The translations under genes and the position numbers were made by a program. The notes under the pieces were generated by a model that was not told the DNA's origin, did no database searches, and saw nothing but the letters and a program-made list of their open reading frames with translations. Below are positions 50,891 through 63,348 of a stretch of DNA of 64,000 bases, piece after piece. The stretch is from Parasitella parasitica NRRL 2501 (taxonomy: Eukaryota; Fungi; Mucoromycota). Location of the stretch: the NCBI GenBank assembly GCA_025201805.1, contig MU619254.1, positions 181,351 to 245,350 on the forward strand. Direction: 5' to 3'. The stretch's first letter is position 1. Each line of letters starts with the position of its first letter.

Positions 50891-53800
50891 ATGGCAACCC
50901 AATATTACTCATCCTCTGCTGCCTCTGAGAAGCTGGAAGAAATAGACGAAGAAGAGCAGCTCATGTGGCAATCTGAACATGCCGCAGCTCATCAGCACCT
51001 TCAACAGCATCACCATATCCCCGAAGAAGACGAATATGAGGATGACCAAGACAGTGAGGAAGAAGACGAATTGATGATCGAGGACGCATCCTCCATGTCA
51101 TCGTCTCCTAGCATACCGGATGAAAACATCAACTTTGACCTCGTATACGCGCTGCATACATTTGTAGCAACCGTGGAAGGCCAGGCGTCTGTCGTTAAAG
51201 GTGATGCTCTGATTTTGATGGAAGATACAAACATTTATTGGTGGTTAGTTGAGGTGTTAAAGACACGTGAAGTCGGTTATATCCCGGCAGAGAACATTGA
51301 GGTAAGCGACATATAGCGGCGCTGGATAAATTCATGCTGAGTAACGTTCTTTGATAGACACCATACGAAAGATTGGCTAGATTAAACAAGCACCGTAATG
51401 TCGAAATCACTTCGCCGTCGATCCACGATACAACTCCTTTGCCTTTAGCTGCTCAGCACCCGCTGCACCCACCTCGTAGAGTCGTCATTGCCGACGAATC
51501 CATGTCGCAGATCTTTTTTTATGAAGTGGAGTCAGAGATCGACGAAGACGAAGACCCAGAACGCTTTGATGAAGAGGACGAGCGCGACATGGAGGACGAC
51601 GGCCAAGATGCAGAGAATACTAATGAACAAGCCCACAGTACTTTACAGGAATACCAGAATGAATTCCATGAAATGGTCATGGACCCAGAAGAGCCTGCCG
51701 AATCAAAGCAAGAGTGGCAAGAAAAGAGCTGGGAAGTTGACGATACGCCACACCCTATGGAGGCACCCTCTGCCAGCACGACATGCTCAACCTTGGAGCA
51801 AACCAGTGAGGAAGATCAGCCACAGATAATGGAGCTTCGCGTGTTTGCAGGAAACATTGGAACAGGGCCATTGTTCCATACATTTTCGATATCACTCGCT
51901 ACTACGGCCGACGAGCTGATCAAAACGTCCGTGCAAAAATTTGGCATGCACGCAGAGCCTTCTCAAGACACCACAATCGAGTACTACTTGGCTGTGCAAG
52001 GCATGGATGGCGACGAATACGTATTGTCTGCTCAAGACAAGCCATTTTCCATTTTCAAAACATTGACAGATTCGTTGACTACACCTATGCCGTCATTTTC
52101 GCACGTCAAACGCATCTCACAGCAATCACTGTCTTCTCTGCAATCACGCAACAGTACGTCTCGTCGACCCAGATCAAGCAGCTTTAGTAACTACGAGCAG
52201 ACAAGCTTCGATGAGGACTCAGTCATCCGATTCTACATCCATCGCCGCATCAAGCGGGCACATGAACGAGAAGGTTTGCTCTATATCAAAGTATCTCTTT
52301 ATCCAGATGAAACTGCAACTACAGCATCTACTGTTGCGAACCCCCAGCCTGCATTTATCAAGAATCCTACTAAATCTTCAAAATTGTCCAAGAAGCGGCA
52401 GCAGCAGCAGCAACAGCAACAAATTCGCTCTGAGATCGACCGCATCGACAAGATCATCTCTGTCCGTCAAGAGTCTCCAATTGGCGCAGTTATTAATCTC
52501 GCCCTTGAAAAGTTCCATGTGCCTGACGCGGTAGCAGATGATTACCAGCCCGGCAATAATCAGCAATTACGGAATTCCAGACAACTAGGCAAATACAGAA
52601 TGTCGGTACGGGGCAACGGTCAAGGTAAAATTCAGGGAGGATAAAGGAGAGGGAAAGAAAAAGAGAAAGAGAGAGAGAGAGAGATATTAATAGCCCTTCA
52701 ATAATTAGAAACTGAATTAAACCCAAATGAACTCATGTCAAATGTGCTTTTACAACAAAAGTCCTTCTCTCCTAATCACACGGGTCCCATTACAAGCGAT
52801 CTGCTATTTGTCGTACGCAAAGCTGGCTCCAACACAAAGAAGCAATCGCAAAAGGAAAGACACACAGGCACAGCAAAGTCATCGCAAATAGAGCAACTGC
52901 CTCAGCTATCCATTGCAAAAAACGAAGAATACGTGCGACGACCAAGCATCCTTGATATTTTAATGGATGCTGCTCCTAAAATGGGTGAACGAAGACCGAG
53001 TGTCATGAGTAGTTTACTCGAACCCCCAGCACGTTTAACGGAGGATGGCAGGAGGCCATCTTCTGGTCTAAATAATACGCAGCAAGCCTCACCTTCGTCT
53101 TCTTCTTCCTCTTCTTTTCCTACAAGTACAAAATCACCCAACTCACTTCTTGGGTTCAACAGACGCTCTTCTGCTCAATCATCCTCTGTAATATCAAGCT
53201 CTTCTATTGACGAGCAGCAATTGATTCATTCAGACTCCACCCTAATTATGGACAATTTAGAAGTTACACCTACATCCTCATCATCCATCATGCGTCCGTC
53301 CAACAGTATTAGCACAGAAAATCGAAGAAAAGAATCCTTCAAGCAGCAGCTCAAACGCTTTGTCGGCTGGGGTTCTTCCTCCTCTGCGTCTTCGCCTACC
53401 AAAAAGACCATCCCTCCTCCCTTGACAACACCTTTCTCTAATTACAGCGATATTCAATCTCCATCTGATATCAGTTTCGTATCTGCTCCATCTACTCCAC
53501 TGCCCCCTACACCTGGTACGCCAAGATCATTCGTACCAAACAGTGCCAAATCTCGTCAAGGAAGCACAAGTCACCCGTTAGAAACAAGCACTCCCGTCAT
53601 GTCTAGAAGACCTAGTGAGAACGCTGCCCTGAACGACCCATCGGCAGCTGCCATGGCTGCAGTTGCTGCTGTTACGGCTGCCAACAAGCGATTGTCTACT
53701 GTATCCTCCGTGTCCTCCTCCACAACCTCCTCAGTTACCTCGGAAGAAATTGCTGCTGCTACGAACCAAGGACTTATGATGGCCGACGCAAACGATGATG

Positions 53801-54495
53801 ATAGTTCGGACGAGGACGACGAAGACGTGGGCGCTAAAGACAGTAAAAAGCAAGTGTCTTTCGATCAACAAAAGTCTTTAGAACAAATCGCTGAACCACC
53901 ACAAGCAATCCAAGCTGAAGCAATGGTGCAAAACAACATGGCGGCAGAGGAACCAAACGATATCCAAGCACAGTATGCCATGTGGATGAACAGCCAAACC
54001 AACATTGGTGTCCCAGAAGAAGAGGTCAGTGTAGCCCCTATTCCACCCGCTAAGGTTCCTTCTACGGCAGCAAACACGGCAATTTCGACCAAAGCGCTTC
54101 CCCCTGTTGCTCCACAACAACCTGCTAGAAGCCCATTAAGGAATAAATCATCCAATATTTCAAATGCTACTACTGCAACAACAAATAATGTGCCCTCAGT
54201 CGTTGCCACAACCCCAGCACAGTCTACCTGTGCAACAACTGCTACTCCCTCCATCGCCTCAGCAAACACCAAGACGGAAATTGACGAGTCTGTGCTACCA
54301 GATTCATCTGTCCAGAAACAACAGCAAGAGCCACTGCATCCCATGCCATCTAATAACGGACAAGACATTGATGACTTGTTTTTACTGGTTGCTCATGGTG
54401 TTGATTTCCTGACTTCAAGAGAGAATACAAAATGGGAGGAAGAAGGAGGCTATGAATTCCATCCATGGAACAGACCTCAAAGCTCGTTTTCCGTA

Positions 54496-54533
<38 letters not shown>

Positions 54534-54767
54534 TAATAAAGCAATGCCAACGCTTCCAGGCGATCATAGCAATGAGGGTTCTATGGCAGACTCATCAGCA
54601 AGTAATGGCAACAATGATGTTGCAGATAATACAAGTGCAGCCTTAGCAATGGCTAGATCATTGCTGTTGGCTCCTACTGCTTCTGAGGGACAGCAGCAAA
54701 ACAAGCCAATTTCTCCTCCTTTGACTCCTATACCTCAGCAACAAGATAATTCTCAAGAGGAACATGT

Positions 54768-54828
<61 letters not shown>

Positions 54829-55050
54829 ACACAGCAAGAATCACCATTATCGATGGCTAAACGCATTCTAGGGGCCAAAGTTGAAATTCCATCACCAACT
54901 CAAACACAATTACAGCAACAGCAACATCAGTCTGTTGACGATGAGGTATGTTTTGTATATAAAGTGAGATTTTGCTTGTGCATTGACGCTAATAAATGTC
55001 ATAAATTTTAGGAACTACAACGTATTGTTGCTGCGCATATAGTGTTTTAA
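50891..55050 (+). CDS. Tea4/Bud14-like SH3 plus Ras-association-type polarity protein
   Basis: SH3 VYALHTFVATVEGQASVVKGD...YWWLV...GYIPAENIE|TPYERLARLNKHRN, characteristic of Tea4/Bud14. RA-like LRVFAGNI. PolyQ tracts. Terminal exon 55012-55050. Confidence 0.87.
54769..54828 (+). repeat. (CAA)20 coding repeat (polyQ); a (CAG)11 lies at 54499-54531
   Basis: Direct reading. Confidence 0.95.
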
Positions 55051-56246: not shown

Positions 56247-56657
56247 ATGCCTACAATACAATCTTTAGTAATAAACACACACACACACACACACACAGGA
56301 TTCAAACTGTCCAACCTTTGCCTAATTAAGATGAATCAAGATTACTTGATCGTGAATATCGTCATTAATTGACCTGCTTGTATTGAGTCTTTCAGTGAAA
56401 TCTATCAACGCAAATTGAGCCTCTATCGTCTTGAATGGACGAGCGTACGCTTGATGCGACCTCTGCGTACAGCTTATGCCTGTTTACTGCGACTGCAAGG
56501 AAGCAAGTAGACATGGACATGCCATCCGAGTCACACGCACAAGGATCCGTCCCTACGAGGTGTGTCCTAACAGAATAAGGCCAGGAGAGTGCTTTTGAAA
56601 TGTATCTATTTCTCCTTAAAACTAACGCTATTTGCCCTTTCTAATTGAATACAAGTG

Positions 56658-57667
56658 ATGGCTCGGTGGACGCTAACAGGCCTTCAAGAAGGCATCACAT
56701 ATGCTGTTCAAGGCATCGCCATTGTAATCCAAAACCCAAGTATTCGACAACAACGTTTTCTAAAGACTTTTATATATCTATCCATGCTATCATTCATTTT
56801 ACTAGGACTTACCAATGTGCTGATAGCTACTCCAATCCATGTTTTTCGATTCATCTTGTGGTTCTCGACCAACGACAAGGCCTCACAAGCGGATAGAGCA
56901 TTAGAGTCAGCCAATCGATTTGTGCGTGAATTGGTAGCATCAGTGCCCCTTTTAGCGTTGCTATTCATGCGATATGTATATCCCAAGCCACTAGATGATT
57001 TGTTCATGGAATCTTTACGCTATTTAGATTCAATCCATCCTGATAGAGCACCGTATGCTAGCATTTTGGCCCAGCAAAGATTCAAAAGAAGATATTGGGT
57101 TGATATGAGGGATTACCTGTCTCGAACTTGGAAAAAAGTGAGGCTGGGATTACTGCTGCTGTTACTATCCATGATTCCTTTTGTTGGTAAATTTGTTTTT
57201 CCTGCAGCTGGTAATGTATACACCTGTAGATGGCCATGAACAGACCAACTGATTCCAAGTGTATAGGTGCCTATACTACTTACAAAGCATTGGGCAAAAC
57301 ACAGGGCATTGCTGTAGGTATCTGCTTTTTCTTTCTTCCTAGATGGGCCACAATGAAGCTTGTGCGTGCCTTGATTGGAATGAGATCACTCATGCGTGAA
57401 TTGCTGGCTCCTTACTTTGTGAGAATGCGAATGTCTCACAGAGAAAAGCGCAGATGGTTCAGTGGGCGTAAGGATGTTCTATTTGGGTTTTCTGGTATTG
57501 CATATATCATTATTCGATTGCCCATAGTTGGCATCATTGGATACGGCATTGCTCAAGCGGCTTCTGCCTACATGCTGACGGTTGTCACTGAACCACCATC
57601 AAGGGACATATTCACTAAAAAGTTGGATGAACACGAGAATAGCGTAGACGATTTGAAAGGTGCCTGA
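56658..57667 (+). CDS. Multi-pass membrane protein, EI24/UsgS-like, 2 exons
   Basis: Several hydrophobic segments; LDDLFMESLRYLD, RSLMRELLAPYFVR, WFSGRKDVLFGF, AQAASAYML. Intron 57211-57267. The family label is tentative. Confidence 0.75.
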
Positions 57668-58427
57668 CAAACTTAATGATACAAAGATGGAGAAACTATT
57701 TTATACTTCACTATATGAAGAGTCAATCGTATCTGTTTCTTAATGCATAAATGCTTCTTTATTTTACCATTACGTTGCGTAATAATGTAGCACATCATGC
57801 GTAGAGTAACTTTTTCATTGTGTGCATGCATACATCGCTGACTGTACGTCAGAATCTATACGGATTGCGTACATGATTCAAATTTATTAGAATAATTATC
57901 GACTTTGAATACAGCAAATGTTACTTAAACATATCCATGTTGGCATTATGGTTTTTGGCAACGTCTTAGATGTGGCTTAAACACTGAGGTTCCAGGGCAA
58001 GTTCCGATTACTCCAGGGCCAGGATCAGATGTACATTGGATATAGTCTTTATCAACACCAGCGACCGGATAGAGGCCAGCAGCACCAGCACCACCTTTAC
58101 AAAAGTCTTCTCTTTCTAAATTTTACTAGTCAACTAATAACGCCATAACAATAGCACAGTTAATATATTTACTCGAAAGAATGCTAGCAGCGTTCACACC
58201 ATATGCGATGCCAAGGGTCGCAATGATTAAAGTAAAAGAAATGTGCATTTTTGAATAATGTCAAAAGGATTGCAGTCGCTGGGCACCCTTATATACTTGT
58301 GTTTCCTATGCAAGCAGCTGTTTTTAGTATCGCACCTCATGCTAAACTACCATACCCTTTCAAGAATTTGATTCGTATTCTTTAATTAAATCTACTAAAA
58401 CATTATACGCCCCTCAACACAACATAT
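57169..58427 (+). repeat. Left arm of an inverted duplication (partner 59642-60820)
   Basis: 57169-57534 is identical to the reverse complement of 60455-60820. The 3' flank, peptide gene and promoter align as diverged homology. Confidence 0.93.
57946..58248 (-). CDS. Small secreted Cys peptide with a CBM14/peritrophin-A-like (putative chitin-binding) domain, 81 aa, 2 exons (absent from the ORF track)
   Basis: Exons 58248-58173 and 58115-57946 give MHISFTLIIATLGIAYGVNAASILSKR-EDFCKGGAGAAGLYPVAGVDKDYIQCTSDPGPGVIGTCPGTSVFKPHLRRCQKP*. It has a signal peptide, a KR site and a TATATAA about 40 nt upstream. Confidence 0.85.
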
Positions 58428-58855: not shown

Positions 58856-59120
58856 GCAGCACTGGAAAGCTATAGCAAATAATTTTACAGGCACGATCAA
58901 CAACTTTAAGCAATGATTATTTTCCGGATTCAATGACAATACAAATGCCCATATATACGTAATAGGCAAACTTGAGCTTCGGGAAATAATGAAACACATC
59001 CCTGCTGATCATATCAAGGAGATGAATAAAAAAAGTTGAAATTATCTTCAAGTTGTATATGATGAACTATAGGCATAATATATGCTATAGGCACTTGATG
59101 CGTGAGCTGCTTGTTAAAAA
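58856..59120 (+). repeat. Direct repeat, copy 1 (copy 2 at about 60832-61097)
   Basis: About 265 bp alignable, with a shared exact core AAACACATCCCTGCTGATCATATCAAGGAGATGAATAAAAAAA. Confidence 0.9.
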
Positions 59121-59814
59121 CGATCAAAAGTAGGCTGACTTTCCCAACCTAACACCTTTGAATGCGGTATAATAACAAAATCCGCTTCGGTTGACACACC
59201 TCGAGCAAACAATCAAAATTCCGTATGTAGAGTAATTTCTCATATCGTTTGTATACCATCGTCTTAATAACCTATACTTTGTTTTGATCATTTAAAAGAC
59301 TGACAGTTTATCATATCAGACGTTAGCAGAAAAGCAAGAAAGATTTTCTGGACATTATCTGGTCTTGTAGTTGCTATGAGCGTCGCATTCAAGAAAATTT
59401 ATAGCTACTACTTGCCTGGAGAATTAACATAGCTGAAATGCCGAATTATGATGTTAAGATATTTCATTTCGTTGTGTATAACAAACCGAAGAATGAAAAT
59501 CAATCATACGGCATCTGTTCTCTCCTTTTTTTTTTTTTTTTGAGACATCTTTTCCCCTTTTTTTTCCTTTTCATACATTTCTTTTTACTTTTTTTTTTTT
59601 TTTTTTTTTATTAATACCTCAGATTGTCCGCCACAGCGAAATAATGTTGTGTTAAGGAATATGCCGGTATGGTATTCAAGTAAAACCAGCAAGAATATGA
59701 ATCGAATACTTGAAAGGGTATGATAGTTCAGTATGATGTGCAATACTAAAGACAACTGCTTGCATAGAAAAACACAAGTATCTAAAGATGCTCAAACATC
59801 ACAATACTTTTGAC

Positions 59815-60129
59815 ATGATTCAGAAATGCACTTTAATCATTAGCATCCTTGGAAACCTTGGTATCGCATTCAGTAGTGGCGAGATTTTTTAAGCAGGTAA
59901 GTAAACTAATCATGGGATTTTTATAGTGTTGATGGCTGACTTGCAGACTTAAGTATTGGTAGAGCTTTGTAAATATAGTCCTGGCAGCGCTGGCCCCTAT
60001 GAATTCCCTGATTCCACCGTCGATAATTCGTATATTAAATGCACATCTAATGCTGGCAATGGAAAAATCGGATTCTTCCTCACAGGCGCAGTGTATAAGC
60101 CAGCATTAAGATGTTGTCAAATGAAATAA
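59815..60129 (+). pseudogene. Disabled paralogue of the CBM14-like peptide gene
   Basis: MIQKCTLIISILGNLGIAFSSGEIF*A|ELCKYSPGSAGPYEFPDSTVDNSYIKCTSNAGNGKIGFFLTGAVYKPALRCCQMK*. In-frame TAA at 59890-59892, third Cys replaced by Phe, TATA changed to TATCTAA. Confidence 0.8.
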
Positions 60130-60363: not shown

Positions 60364-60820
60364 CTACAGTATTCTTTTAGTCATCTTAAATGGCAGCCAA
60401 GTGACAGCGGTCAGCATGTAAGCAGAGGCTGCTTGAGCAATGCCGTATCCAATAATGCCAACTATGGGCAATCGAATAATGATATATGCAATACCAGAAA
60501 ACCCAAATAGAACATCCTTACGCCCACTGAACCATCTGCGCTTTTCTCTGTGAGACATTCGCATTCTCACAAAGTAAGGAGCCAGCAATTCACGCATGAG
60601 TGATCTCATTCCAATCAAGGCACGCACAAGCTTCATTGTGGCCCATCTAGGAAGAAAGAAAAAGCAGATACCTACAGCAATGCCCTGTGTTTTGCCCAAT
60701 GCTTTGTAAGTAGTATAGGCACCTATACACTTGGAATCAGTTGGTCTGTTCATGGCCATCTACAGGTGTATACATTACCAGCTGCAGGAAAAACAAATTT
60801 ACCAACAAAAGGAATCATGG
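60364..60820 (-). pseudogene. 5'-truncated inverted copy of the EI24/UsgS-like gene (intron retained)
   Basis: Identical to 57169-57534, then diverges; lacks the 5' part of the CDS. Confidence 0.88.
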
Positions 60821-60831
60821 TTGGTAATAAT

Positions 60832-61097
60832 AGCAGTGCTGGAAAGATATGGCAAATAATTTTGCAGGTATGTGATCAGCAGCTCTAATCAATGATCATC
60901 CCCCGGAATCAATAACAATACAAATGCTCACATAAACGTAATAGCAAACCTGAGTTTAGGGAAATAATAAAACACATCCCTGCTGATCATATCAAGGAGA
61001 TGAATAAAAAAATTTGAACTTGTCCTTAAGTCATACATGGTCAGCAATTTGCATAGTATATGCTGTAGGCACTTGATGCGTGAGCTATTTTTAAAAA
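60832..61097 (+). repeat. Direct repeat, copy 2
   Basis: Homologous to 58856-59120; abuts the end of the inverted arm. Confidence 0.9.
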
Positions 61098-61739
61098 AGC
61101 ACAAAAGCTAATTTCAAAGTGCTTTTTACATTATAGGGTGCATAGATAAACAAAGAAACCTTTTGTCTTTGATTCGTGAATACATATCAAGTCGAAGCAT
61201 GAATGAAGCTACATTATACTTCAAAAAGACAAAAAAACCCTAAGTAAAGCTTTCATTTTAAAATGATGTTGCGTCTTATATTGTGTAAATTATAATACAT
61301 GTCATTTTTGTAGTATTAGCAATATGTATAGTGTACTGATACATTTTTTACATGCGAGTTTTCAATGAATTTATTAGTTAAATTTGAGTATATTGACATG
61401 AGATGCTACAGAATAGGTGCGATTCACTATAGTATTTCATCAAGACAATCGTGAACGAACGTATCGTAATGTCTTGTTTGAATACATCATATGAAAAAGT
61501 ATTATAAAAGCAATCACGTCGCAGGACAACACTTGAACCATACACTTGCGGCACACATCTCGGCTTTTGCGGGTAATCATTACGTAAAATGTCAATAGCA
61601 TGACAAGAAAAGGCTGTTTTATGTAAGAAAGCTTCTGTGCTCAACGTACTTAAAAAAAATACAGCGTTTTCTTCTACAAGAGAGGGTGATATACATATAA
61701 GGGTGATGATACAAAAAGATTCTTCGAGCTTTAACGAGA

Positions 61740-63348
61740 TTACGGTGGGCTGTTATTGCTGGATGAAGAGCTTTTAATCGTGTGATAATGTCTCCAGCCA
61801 TTATCCAGTTCTCCATCATGACATAATTCGATTGATTTCATCCACTTTGTCTCCAAAGCTTGATCAACTGTCCAACGAGTTTCTGGGCTGGGGTCCAGCA
61901 TGCCCGCTAAGCATTCCTTTTCGTCATCTGTGAGACAATCACTTTGATCAAAACTATCCCAAAGATCACACGAAGCAGGGCCTAATTTGCTTCTTTGTTG
62001 AACGTACAATCCGAAATCTTTGTCGCCTCCATCTTGAGCAGCAGCAGCAACAGCAGCAGGTGACCCTGCCGTGGCATTAGGAGGGGGACTGGGGCCAGGT
62101 TTACCCGTATAGAAAGCAGCAGCAAAAGGTAAGCTGTGGTAGCGAATACAGAAATAAGTGACGGCAGCACTCCACACATCCAATGCCTGACCCAGATAGC
62201 CATCTTCCTTGCCTTTTAGGTTCCATAATTCAGGTGACCAAAAGGGTTCAGAACCACACCATTTGTGACACAGGTGAATGTCTTTTTCAAAGCATGTTTG
62301 AACAACATCAGCTACACCAAAATCTGCAATTTTGAGAGTGCCACCTTTTGTCAAGATGAGGTTTTCAGGCTTTATGTCACGATGAGCGATGCCGAGATGA
62401 TGCAGATGCTGTAAACCCAAAAGTAGTTGCTTGAATAAACAAGCGCCTTCCATCACGGGCATATTAGGTTTTTCATTAAGTAGATTGAATAAATCGCCAC
62501 CATCGCACTGTATTGAAATATACAGACATTTGAGTAGATTACTTTTGGACATATACAAGTCTACTTACATATTCCATTACAGTGCACCATCTATCGTGCT
62601 CGTCTATCACTAAATCCATTGTCTCTACCACATGGGGATGTCCGCTCACAGTCTTACTGATGCAGTATTCGTTGTGCATTCTCTTTAGATATTCCTTCTC
62701 ATCTTCCGTCTTGCCTCGTTTAATAAATTCCTTTACGGCAAGAATGCGGCCTTCGTGCGATTGAACAAGGCGGATCACAGCAGTAGCCCCGCTCCCAATG
62801 TTGTTCTTGTTGGTTGCTCCGGATGCCTTAGTGCTAGCATCTTTGGCCGGCTTAATGTAATCACCGTACTTTTCATTCAACCTTGGCACATTACTGGAAG
62901 GAGAGGATGTTTCTGACGAGTCATTGCTTGCATGTAGATGCTTTTTAGTCCAAGAAGCAGGACTAGCAATGAAATTACCTATGGATCTGCTCAGTTTATG
63001 ATGTTGACGTTGATGTTCACTGGTAATGGTAGCTGACTCGACACTGAGGCAGCTTTGGGCACCGCTGCTGCTTCGTCGATGAGGTGTGGAGTTCACGCTG
63101 TTCGGTTGAGGCTCGGGCGTACCCGCTGGTGTCATTTTGAGATTTGATCGAGAATTGTTGCTGCTTGAAAACAAGAACCCAAATCGACTAGATTTCTTGA
63201 TGGGAATAGATTTTGAACGAAAAATCACGGAATCGCCTCTTAATACATTGGAAGGCTGATGCTGTTGGGGTGATGTCGGTACATCCATGGGCACTGGTGA
63301 TGAAGACCTATGCTCGAGAGCTATAATTTCTTGATTCGTAGCTGACAT
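61740..63348 (-). CDS. NPR/HAL/Hrk1-family Ser/Thr kinase, 2 exons
   Basis: IGSGATAVIRL, AVKEF, EYCISK, VMEY|CDGGDLF, AHRDIKPENL, KIADFG, CGSEPFWSPE, DVWS. Confidence 0.93.

Follow-up and report, generated by a model that had tools for sequence, protein, structure and literature searches.

A small two-exon gene of Parasitella parasitica predicted to encode a secreted protein with a reduced CBM14 domain

The DNA examined here is a 64,000 nt stretch of contig MU619254.1 from Parasitella parasitica NRRL 2501 (the window; coordinates are positions in this 64 kb window unless another sequence is named). On its minus strand lies a small gene, designated copy A and the subject of this study, which an initial annotation had described as encoding a secreted chitin-binding peptide. 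Comparison with relatives in this and a second genome suggests that copy A is a genuine-looking two-exon gene for a secreted pre-protein and, judged by sequence profiles, its domain is homologous to CBM14/peritrophin-A. Its product is a stand-alone member of the CBM14 superfamily with two predicted disulfides, and in form it is nearest to the mite protein Der p 23. Taken as a whole, the findings are best explained by a secreted, reduced CBM14 protein that would bind glycans of the wall, an explanation that we favour tentatively and rate as falling short of probable.

Structure of copy A

Exon 1 of copy A (58248-58173, 76 nt, minus strand) starts with the ATG at 58248 and encodes a signal-like peptide ending VNA/AS and then SILS, and its last base opens a Lys codon. 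An intron of 57 nt in phase 1 (58172-58116), with GT..AG ends (GTAAAT...TTTAG), separates it from exon 2 (58115-57946), which completes the Lys codon with two bases and continues with 55 codons of a four-cysteine CBM14-like domain and a TAA stop. These exon and intron positions are those first proposed, and the minus-strand sequence agrees with them at the ATG, the GT..AG borders and the TAA. The spliced precursor is 81 residues long, with 25 residues from exon 1, 55 from exon 2 and the Lys of the split codon between them; read without splicing, the frame terminates after 40 aa. In exon 1, a short n-region is followed by a hydrophobic core of 15 residues (mean Kyte-Doolittle 1.85, residues 3-17), and the V-N-A / A-S found after this core satisfies the -3/-1 rule for signal peptidase, consistent with the signal peptide originally recognized.

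Exon 2 opens with R, giving S-K-R-E-D-F-C as the precursor junction. The KR pair pointed out previously is made up of the K of the split codon and this R, and 54 residues are left once the leading R is removed from exon 2. The spacing C-x21-C-x11-C-x12-C and the GLYP, YIQC and CP..SVF.P....C motifs, also reported in the initial annotation, are all present in the exon 2 translation, and the chain ends in Q-K-P, 3 residues beyond the last Cys. A promoter block precedes the gene on the minus strand (58288-58382); it includes a CTGCTTGCATAG-like motif at 58317-58306 and, about 47 nt ahead of the ATG, a TATATAAG box at 58295-58288. An AATAAA polyadenylation-like signal (57883-57888, minus strand) is found 58 nt past the stop. 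In the work described below the two exons were queried separately, and the sequence searches and the fold used the exon 2 domain rather than the whole precursor.

Relatives of copy A and their genomic context

An exhaustive HMMER/phmmer search of 1.84 billion representatives identified a protein from another P. parasitica assembly as the closest relative of copy A (P0001, CEP14939.1; E 1.8e-14). This protein, here Pp1, is 84 aa long and 63% identical to copy A in the domain, and is named 'Chitin-binding type-2 domain-containing protein' in UniProt (A0A0B7NHG0). After Pp1, the search with copy A exon 2 returned animal CBM14 repeat proteins. One further match, P0002, is a true CBM14 protein but its E-value is inflated by 17 weak repeats, and P0004-P0006 were set aside as repeat-summed artefacts with no kinship to copy A. 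A word-indexed protein search gave no match for exon 2 of either copy A or paralog C (described below), and when the query was a three-sequence alignment it recovered two P. parasitica proteins only.

The locus of Pp1 (LN731777.1, assembly GCA_000938895.1; L006) was used for comparison. It includes two genes of this kind, Pp1, which is annotated, and Pp2, which is not. In the Pp1 gene, exon 1 is also 76 nt, the intron is 58 nt and in phase 1, and the spacing of the four cysteines is equal to that in copy A. The surroundings are syntenic, as both copy A and Pp1 have a protein kinase on one side and a gene for a 326-aa membrane-like protein on the other. The kinase at L006 is 83-92% identical to window positions 61740-63348, and the membrane-like protein is 87-97% identical to positions 56655-57667. 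Pp2 (L006 9237-9538) was found by tblastn; it is intact and was not called by the public annotation of the locus. Its signal exon is 76 nt long and its phase-1 intron 59 nt, and it has the spacing C-x21-C-x11-C-x12-C and a Tyr two residues after the canonical fifth cysteine. A third relative, Pp3 (P0008; L007 5001-5373 in P. parasitica LN718810.1), is annotated as an 85-aa 'hypothetical protein' and is a decayed copy of Pp1, frameshifted in the start region and in the second half of the domain. A DDE_3 transposase gene is located 1 kb away, which suggests transposon-associated dispersal of the family.

In the assembly to which the window belongs (32.8 Mb, 450 contigs), a genome search found no counterpart copies of Pp1 and Pp2. 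Synteny with the L006 assembly is close, but with these two genes absent and a dS of about 0.5 the window genome is a relative of that assembly and not the assembly itself. When all six frames of the 32.8 Mb were scanned with the Pfam CBM_14 profile (PF01607), three weak matches were obtained, the best two being copy A and an intact paralog on contig 9 (paralog C; G000:C9:177632-177931, L004:1297-1596) that is 18-20% identical to copy A. The third, on contig 14, is spurious, with in-frame stops and an overlap with an aminotransferase gene. A match on contig 118 (E 0.46) was not significant. In paralog C the signal exon measures 79 nt and the phase-1 intron 60 nt, the spacing is C-x22-C-x9-C-x14-C and the domain ends in C-V-F. 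In both copy A and paralog C the domain thus lies behind a signal-peptide exon, from which it is separated by an intron in phase 1 (57-60 nt).

The intron position and phase are kept in four genes from the two genomes (copy A, Pp1, Pp2 and paralog C), and the four cysteines are invariant among them despite identities of 20-62%. A four-way DNA alignment of copy A, its sister copy B (see below), Pp1 and Pp2 showed conservation of the promoter block (the CTGCTTGCATAG-like motif and TATA) and of the exon boundaries, and in Pp1 and Pp2, too, an AATAAA is found past the stop. It is on this conservation of intron position and phase, promoter block, AATAAA signal and synteny that the case for the copy A gene rests. 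The family appears from these comparisons to be a small and fast-turning-over one of the Mucoraceae, comprising copy A (intact), copy B (decayed) and paralog C (distant, intact) in the window genome, and Pp1 and Pp2 (intact) and Pp3 (decayed) in P. parasitica L006/L007.

Homology to the CBM14/peritrophin-A domain

When scored against Pfam CBM_14, for which the curated cut-off is 22.1 bits, exon 2 of copy A reached 21.8 bits (E 2e-4), Pp1 31.9, Pp2 30.4 and paralog C 21.6. Profiles built from the fungal sequences alone were then compared with PDB. With three sequences, all nine matches were CBM14 (best E 2.8e-5). With four, eight of nine were, including EHEP from Aplysia (8in3, 5.5e-7), Der p 23 (4zce, 1.2e-4) and the CBM14 of human chitotriosidase, CHIT1 (6so0, 3.7e-4). 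Language-model features likewise indicate CBM_14 clusters. The kinship to CBM14/peritrophin-A put forward in the initial annotation, for which a HMMER comparison with PF01607 had been suggested, is upheld by the sequence profiles, and the matches of the structural model agree with them.

A chance resemblance, in which copy A would be a small Cys-containing open reading frame (ORF) with no kinship to CBM14, appears very improbable. It could draw on the score of copy A just under the Pfam cut-off, on a direct phmmer search of PDB with exon 2 that returned noise only, and on the weak Foldseek E-values of the model (0.036). However, Pp1 and Pp2 pass the cut-off, the fungus-only profiles recover CBM14 almost exclusively, the cysteine spacing is canonical and the top structural matches are all CBM14.

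Cysteine pattern and predicted fold

The peritrophin-A motif is CX15CX5CX9CX12CX5-9C, with disulfides C1-C3, C2-C6 and C4-C5 (PMC10619976). In copy A the gap of 21 between C1 and C3 (15+1+5) and the gap of 12 between C4 and C5 are canonical, and the cysteines align column by column with those of insect and fish CBM14. The canonical C2 position is occupied by Asp47 and the chain finishes before C6. The missing cysteines are consequently C2 and C6, a single disulfide pair, and comparison with the canonical pairing (PMC10619976) bears out what had been claimed on this point. C1-C3 and C4-C5 are the bridges common to all solved CBM14 domains (PMC4844120), and the C2-C6 bridge is absent from Der p 23 and CHIT1 (PMC6128652, PMC4844120). 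Fish CPG2-like repeats (P0003) show the same four-Cys pattern without C2-C6 and score 46 bits on CBM_14. As accepted members also lack C2-C6, the missing bridge is no bar to CBM14 membership. The proposal of a minimal CBM14 variant fits insofar as the form with the two core disulfides is concerned, but this form is not a new one, as Der p 23 and the fish CPG2-like repeat precede it.

An AlphaFold (AF2) model of the domain, built with a 10-row alignment, had a pLDDT of 87.5 and five strands. In a Foldseek search all of the top 12 matches were CBM14, the best being CHIT1 (TM 0.73, rmsd 1.8 A, 29% identity). A VIA search, which is independent of Foldseek, also gave CBM14 for all of the top eight, with Z scores of 6.1 for Der p 23 and for EHEP, 5.6 for CHIT1, 5.4 for Avr4 of Cladosporium fulvum (CfAvr4), 5.3 for Blo t 12, 5.0 for Avr4 of Pseudocercospora fuligena (PfAvr4), 4.0 for tachycitin and 3.6 for Der f 23; unrelated chains were at 3.1 or less. 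The model thus corroborates a predicted CBM14 fold, a distorted beta-sandwich of a three-stranded and a two-stranded sheet.

Rates of change and the inverted duplication

Against their P. parasitica counterparts, the flanking kinase and membrane-protein genes have dN 0.01-0.08, dS 0.42-0.62 and dN/dS 0.03-0.14. For exon 2 of copy A and Pp1 the values are dN 0.33, dS 0.66 and dN/dS 0.50 (bootstrap 95% 0.21-1.12), and for exon 1, the signal peptide, dN 0.21, dS 1.06 and dN/dS about 0.2. The exon 2 dS is close to that of the neighbours, which fits orthology of copy A and Pp1. The dN of the domain is 4-25 times that of the neighbouring genes and the signal exon is more conserved. On these substitution estimates the mature domain is constrained yet fast-evolving. 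Fast change of the domain combined with decayed copies in both genomes is what characterises small secreted proteins of a fast-evolving family that turns over by birth and death.

That the locus is prone to duplication, as first noted, was confirmed by an inverted duplication with a decayed sister copy, copy B (59826-60129, plus strand). In copy B the ATG and the signal-like frame are not in register, a stop precedes the donor, an in-frame TAA lies past the acceptor homologous to that of copy A, and another residue stands in place of the third cysteine. Copy B gave no Pfam hit. Its exon 2 frame is 47-49% identical to that of copy A (dN 0.44, dS 0.55).

Copy A may alternatively be intact in sequence and yet silent or heading to decay, as a copy in a birth-and-death family that is not yet broken. 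We regard this as unlikely. Decayed copies are found in both genomes (B, and Pp3 beside the DDE_3 transposase gene) and dN/dS is 0.5 with an interval reaching 1.1. However, copy A has kept its ORF, both splice sites, the four cysteines at their spacing, the promoter block and the AATAAA at a dS of about 0.66, whereas its sister copy B has several lesions.

A repeat search placed the outer arms of the duplication at 57152-57589 and 60400-60837 (438 nt, 97% complementary), where they span the 3' half of the neighbouring membrane-protein gene. Closer in, the inverted repeat I2 (58302-58382 and 59691-59771) is 86% complementary, and the inverted pair 58240-58382 / 59691-59834 covers the promoters of the two peptide genes. 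Nucleotide identity between copies A and B is 65% in the coding region, 78-86% in the promoter and approximately 82% in the 3' flank; within the duplication it is lowest in the peptide coding region, with no steady fall away from the arms. On this profile, gene conversion may have acted on the arms, the peptide may have changed at an accelerated pace, or both.

Several other features of the locus were observed. A direct repeat of 226 nt (58895-59120 and 60874-61098, 79-85%) has one copy in the spacer and the other past the right arm. Long poly-T and T-rich tracts (59530-59610) are found in the spacer, which separates the two peptide genes in their head-to-head arrangement. An ORF of 131 aa on the minus strand (60364-60759) is a truncated duplicate of the C-terminal half of the neighbouring gene. 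It is near-identical over approximately 118 aa to the ORF at 57230-57667 (plus strand) and diverges afterwards; neither has a Pfam hit, and the ORF at 60364-60759 could be a pseudogene fragment or a chimeric ORF. Elsewhere in the window, a long ORF (52735-55011, plus strand) is Ser/Thr-rich and includes several poly-Gln runs of up to approximately 20 Q.

Processing and possible ligands

Going by the sequence pattern, the signal peptide would be cut after VNA, leaving a protein of approximately 61 residues that would be essentially one reduced CBM14/peritrophin-A domain. Oxidative folding would be expected to give a small distorted beta-sandwich with C1-C3 (Cys31-Cys53) and C4-C5 (Cys65-Cys78) as the presumed pairing, the peripheral C2-C6 bridge having been lost on both sides through the change of C2 to Asp47 and the end of the chain three residues past C5. 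A second cut, at the KR site, had been envisaged in the initial annotation. The KR is present in copy A and limited to it, the corresponding residues being S-R-G in Pp1 and Pp2 and P-R-G in Pp3. As the site is not conserved, Kex2 release of a 54-aa peptide is doubtful; it may occur in the window species and would not be a feature of the family.

The folded protein may reside in or on a chitin/chitosan-rich wall, either its own or that of another fungus, or in the medium, as a glycan-binding shield or a wall-associated protein. Contact with the ligand would be made via Tyr41, Tyr50, Pro66, Phe71 and the basic C-terminus, and not via the canonical Trp/Tyr near C5. Binding of chitin or chitosan is in our judgement the single most likely function, held with less than even confidence and only slightly ahead of a non-chitin role.

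A number of observations weigh against the explanation favoured here. Copy A on its own is 0.3 bits under the Pfam CBM_14 cut-off. The suggested modelling with AlphaFold and Foldseek placed CBM14 matches in the lead when an alignment was supplied, but folding from the single sequence failed (pLDDT 49.6, unusable), and as the alignment used for folding held animal CBM14 rows, the match in fold does not count as independent of the match in sequence. Against chitin binding in particular, the positions C5-1, C5+1 and C5+2, at which CfAvr4 touches GlcNAc with W100, D102 and Y103 (PMC6128652), hold R, Q and K in copy A, and R, V and K in Pp1. A lack of chitin binding has been reported (PMC10619976) for both of the nearest structures, EHEP and Der p 23, the latter being the best-known CBM14 with two disulfides. 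Lastly, the bootstrap interval of the exon 2 dN/dS just takes in 1.

The same gene with the same CBM14 fold might then not be a chitin binder, the scaffold serving another ligand or role as in Der p 23 or Aplysia EHEP. The ligand could be polyphenols, a different polymer of the wall (acidic glucuronans, for example) or a protein partner met during contact with another fungus or a host, and the fast-changing surface would reflect the interaction. We consider this a serious alternative, somewhat less likely than chitin binding. In its favour are the identity of the two best structural matches (both at Z 6.1, EHEP also having the best profile E-value), the replacement by R, Q and K of the aromatic and acidic residues beside C5 (PMC6128652), and a mature domain with a dN 4-25 times that of its neighbours next to a better conserved signal exon and flanks. 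However, known CBM14 binders use non-conserved residues (PMC10619976), so that one lost aromatic is no exclusion. The position C5+2, which is W465 in CHIT1 and Y103 in Avr4, is Lys in copy A and Pp1, while Pp2 (Tyr) and paralog C (Phe) retain an aromatic residue. Among the three residues that are crucial in CHIT1, the Pro at C4+1 alone is kept in copy A; the tyrosines of GLYP and YIQC are also retained, and the wall of the producer is chitin/chitosan.

A further reading, more speculative than either of these and in our view improbable, is that copy A, Pp1, Pp2 and paralog C are Mucoraceae-restricted two-disulfide CBM14 mini-proteins that are diversifying by birth and death. Their aromatic chitin platform would have been swapped for a basic surface, and they would act as interaction molecules. 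The conserved signal exon and promoter, the hypervariable mature domain and repeated pseudogenisation would all belong to this picture. They might, for instance, serve as effectors or shields when one fungus parasitises another, Parasitella being a mycoparasite of other Mucorales, or in defence against chitinases of a host or of bacteria; binding of a wall polymer other than chitin is another possibility.

Known and new elements

To our knowledge, stand-alone fungal CBM14 proteins have been studied almost only as the Avr4 effectors of Dothideomycete plant pathogens. Mucoralean CBM14 modules have already been counted in tables of CAZyme surveys (PMC7928374, PMC5238444), and Pp1 already carries an automatic chitin-binding domain name. 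A literature search found no published characterisation of mucoralean CBM14 proteins. New elements are the gene of copy A, Pp2 as an intact gene absent from the annotation, paralog C, and the evidence of fast birth-and-death evolution. Mucoralean genomes contain tiny two-exon CBM14 genes that are partly missed by annotation, as in the case of Pp2, and that change several-fold faster than their neighbours. If chitin or chitosan binding is true, they would be candidate wall shields in a group to which mycoparasites and agents of mucormycosis belong. If there is no chitin binding, they are a further case of reuse of the peritrophin-A scaffold. Either way, a known family is modestly extended and no new kind of system is added.

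Comparison with known systems

The closest relative, Pp1, differs from copy A in having S-R-G where copy A has S-K-R and in three more C-terminal residues, and its annotation is automatic.

The initial annotation had placed copy A with the Avr4/tachycitin type, and this assignment did not hold, as the additional features of Avr4 are missing, tachycitin is the weakest match of full length, and Der p 23 and EHEP head the structural matches. Avr4 (C. fulvum 6BN0, P. fuligena 4Z4A) resembles copy A in being a fungal, secreted, stand-alone CBM14 protein, and the C1-C3 and C4-C5 disulfides are common to both. Avr4 has eight cysteines in four disulfides, one of them the additional Cys50-Cys56 loop disulfide, together with a helix at the N-terminus and an extended loop in contact with chitin; in copy A the C2-C6 bridge, the helix and this loop are missing. 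CfAvr4 binds its ligand via W100, D102 and Y103, the last of which aligns with the crucial W465 of CHIT1 (PMC6128652). A fungus-only profile matched 6bn0 with an E-value of only 0.64. Membership of the Avr4 family was rejected, as copy A has four cysteines, no residues for the helix or the loop, and R, Q and K in place of the triad.

Tachycitin (1DQC) is likewise a small stand-alone peptide with the CBM14 fold, and is itself antimicrobial and chitin-binding. It is an animal haemocyte peptide and the lowest of the full-length CBM14 matches (Z 4.0, 16% identity), and it retains three of the four Avr4 disulfides, including the C2-C6 equivalent (PMC6128652) that is gone in copy A. Its likeness to copy A goes no further than the common fold.

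The CBM14 of CHIT1 (5HBF, 6SO0) shares FC.G...GLYP, the two core disulfides and the Pro at C4+1 with copy A. It differs in being attached to a GH18 catalytic domain, in having a third disulfide (C460-C462) and in W465, which is Lys in copy A (PMC4844120).

The likeness is greatest to Der p 23 and Der f 23 (4ZCE, 5ZJL), peritrophin-like allergens of house-dust mites, which are stand-alone, secreted, small CBM14 proteins with two core disulfides (PMC6128652). Der p 23 is the top structural match of the model, with an rmsd of 2.2 A over 48 residues at Z 6.1. It is a mite, and hence animal, protein with 17% identity to copy A and a Thr/Pro-rich N-terminal region, and its link to copy A is that of a shared domain family only.

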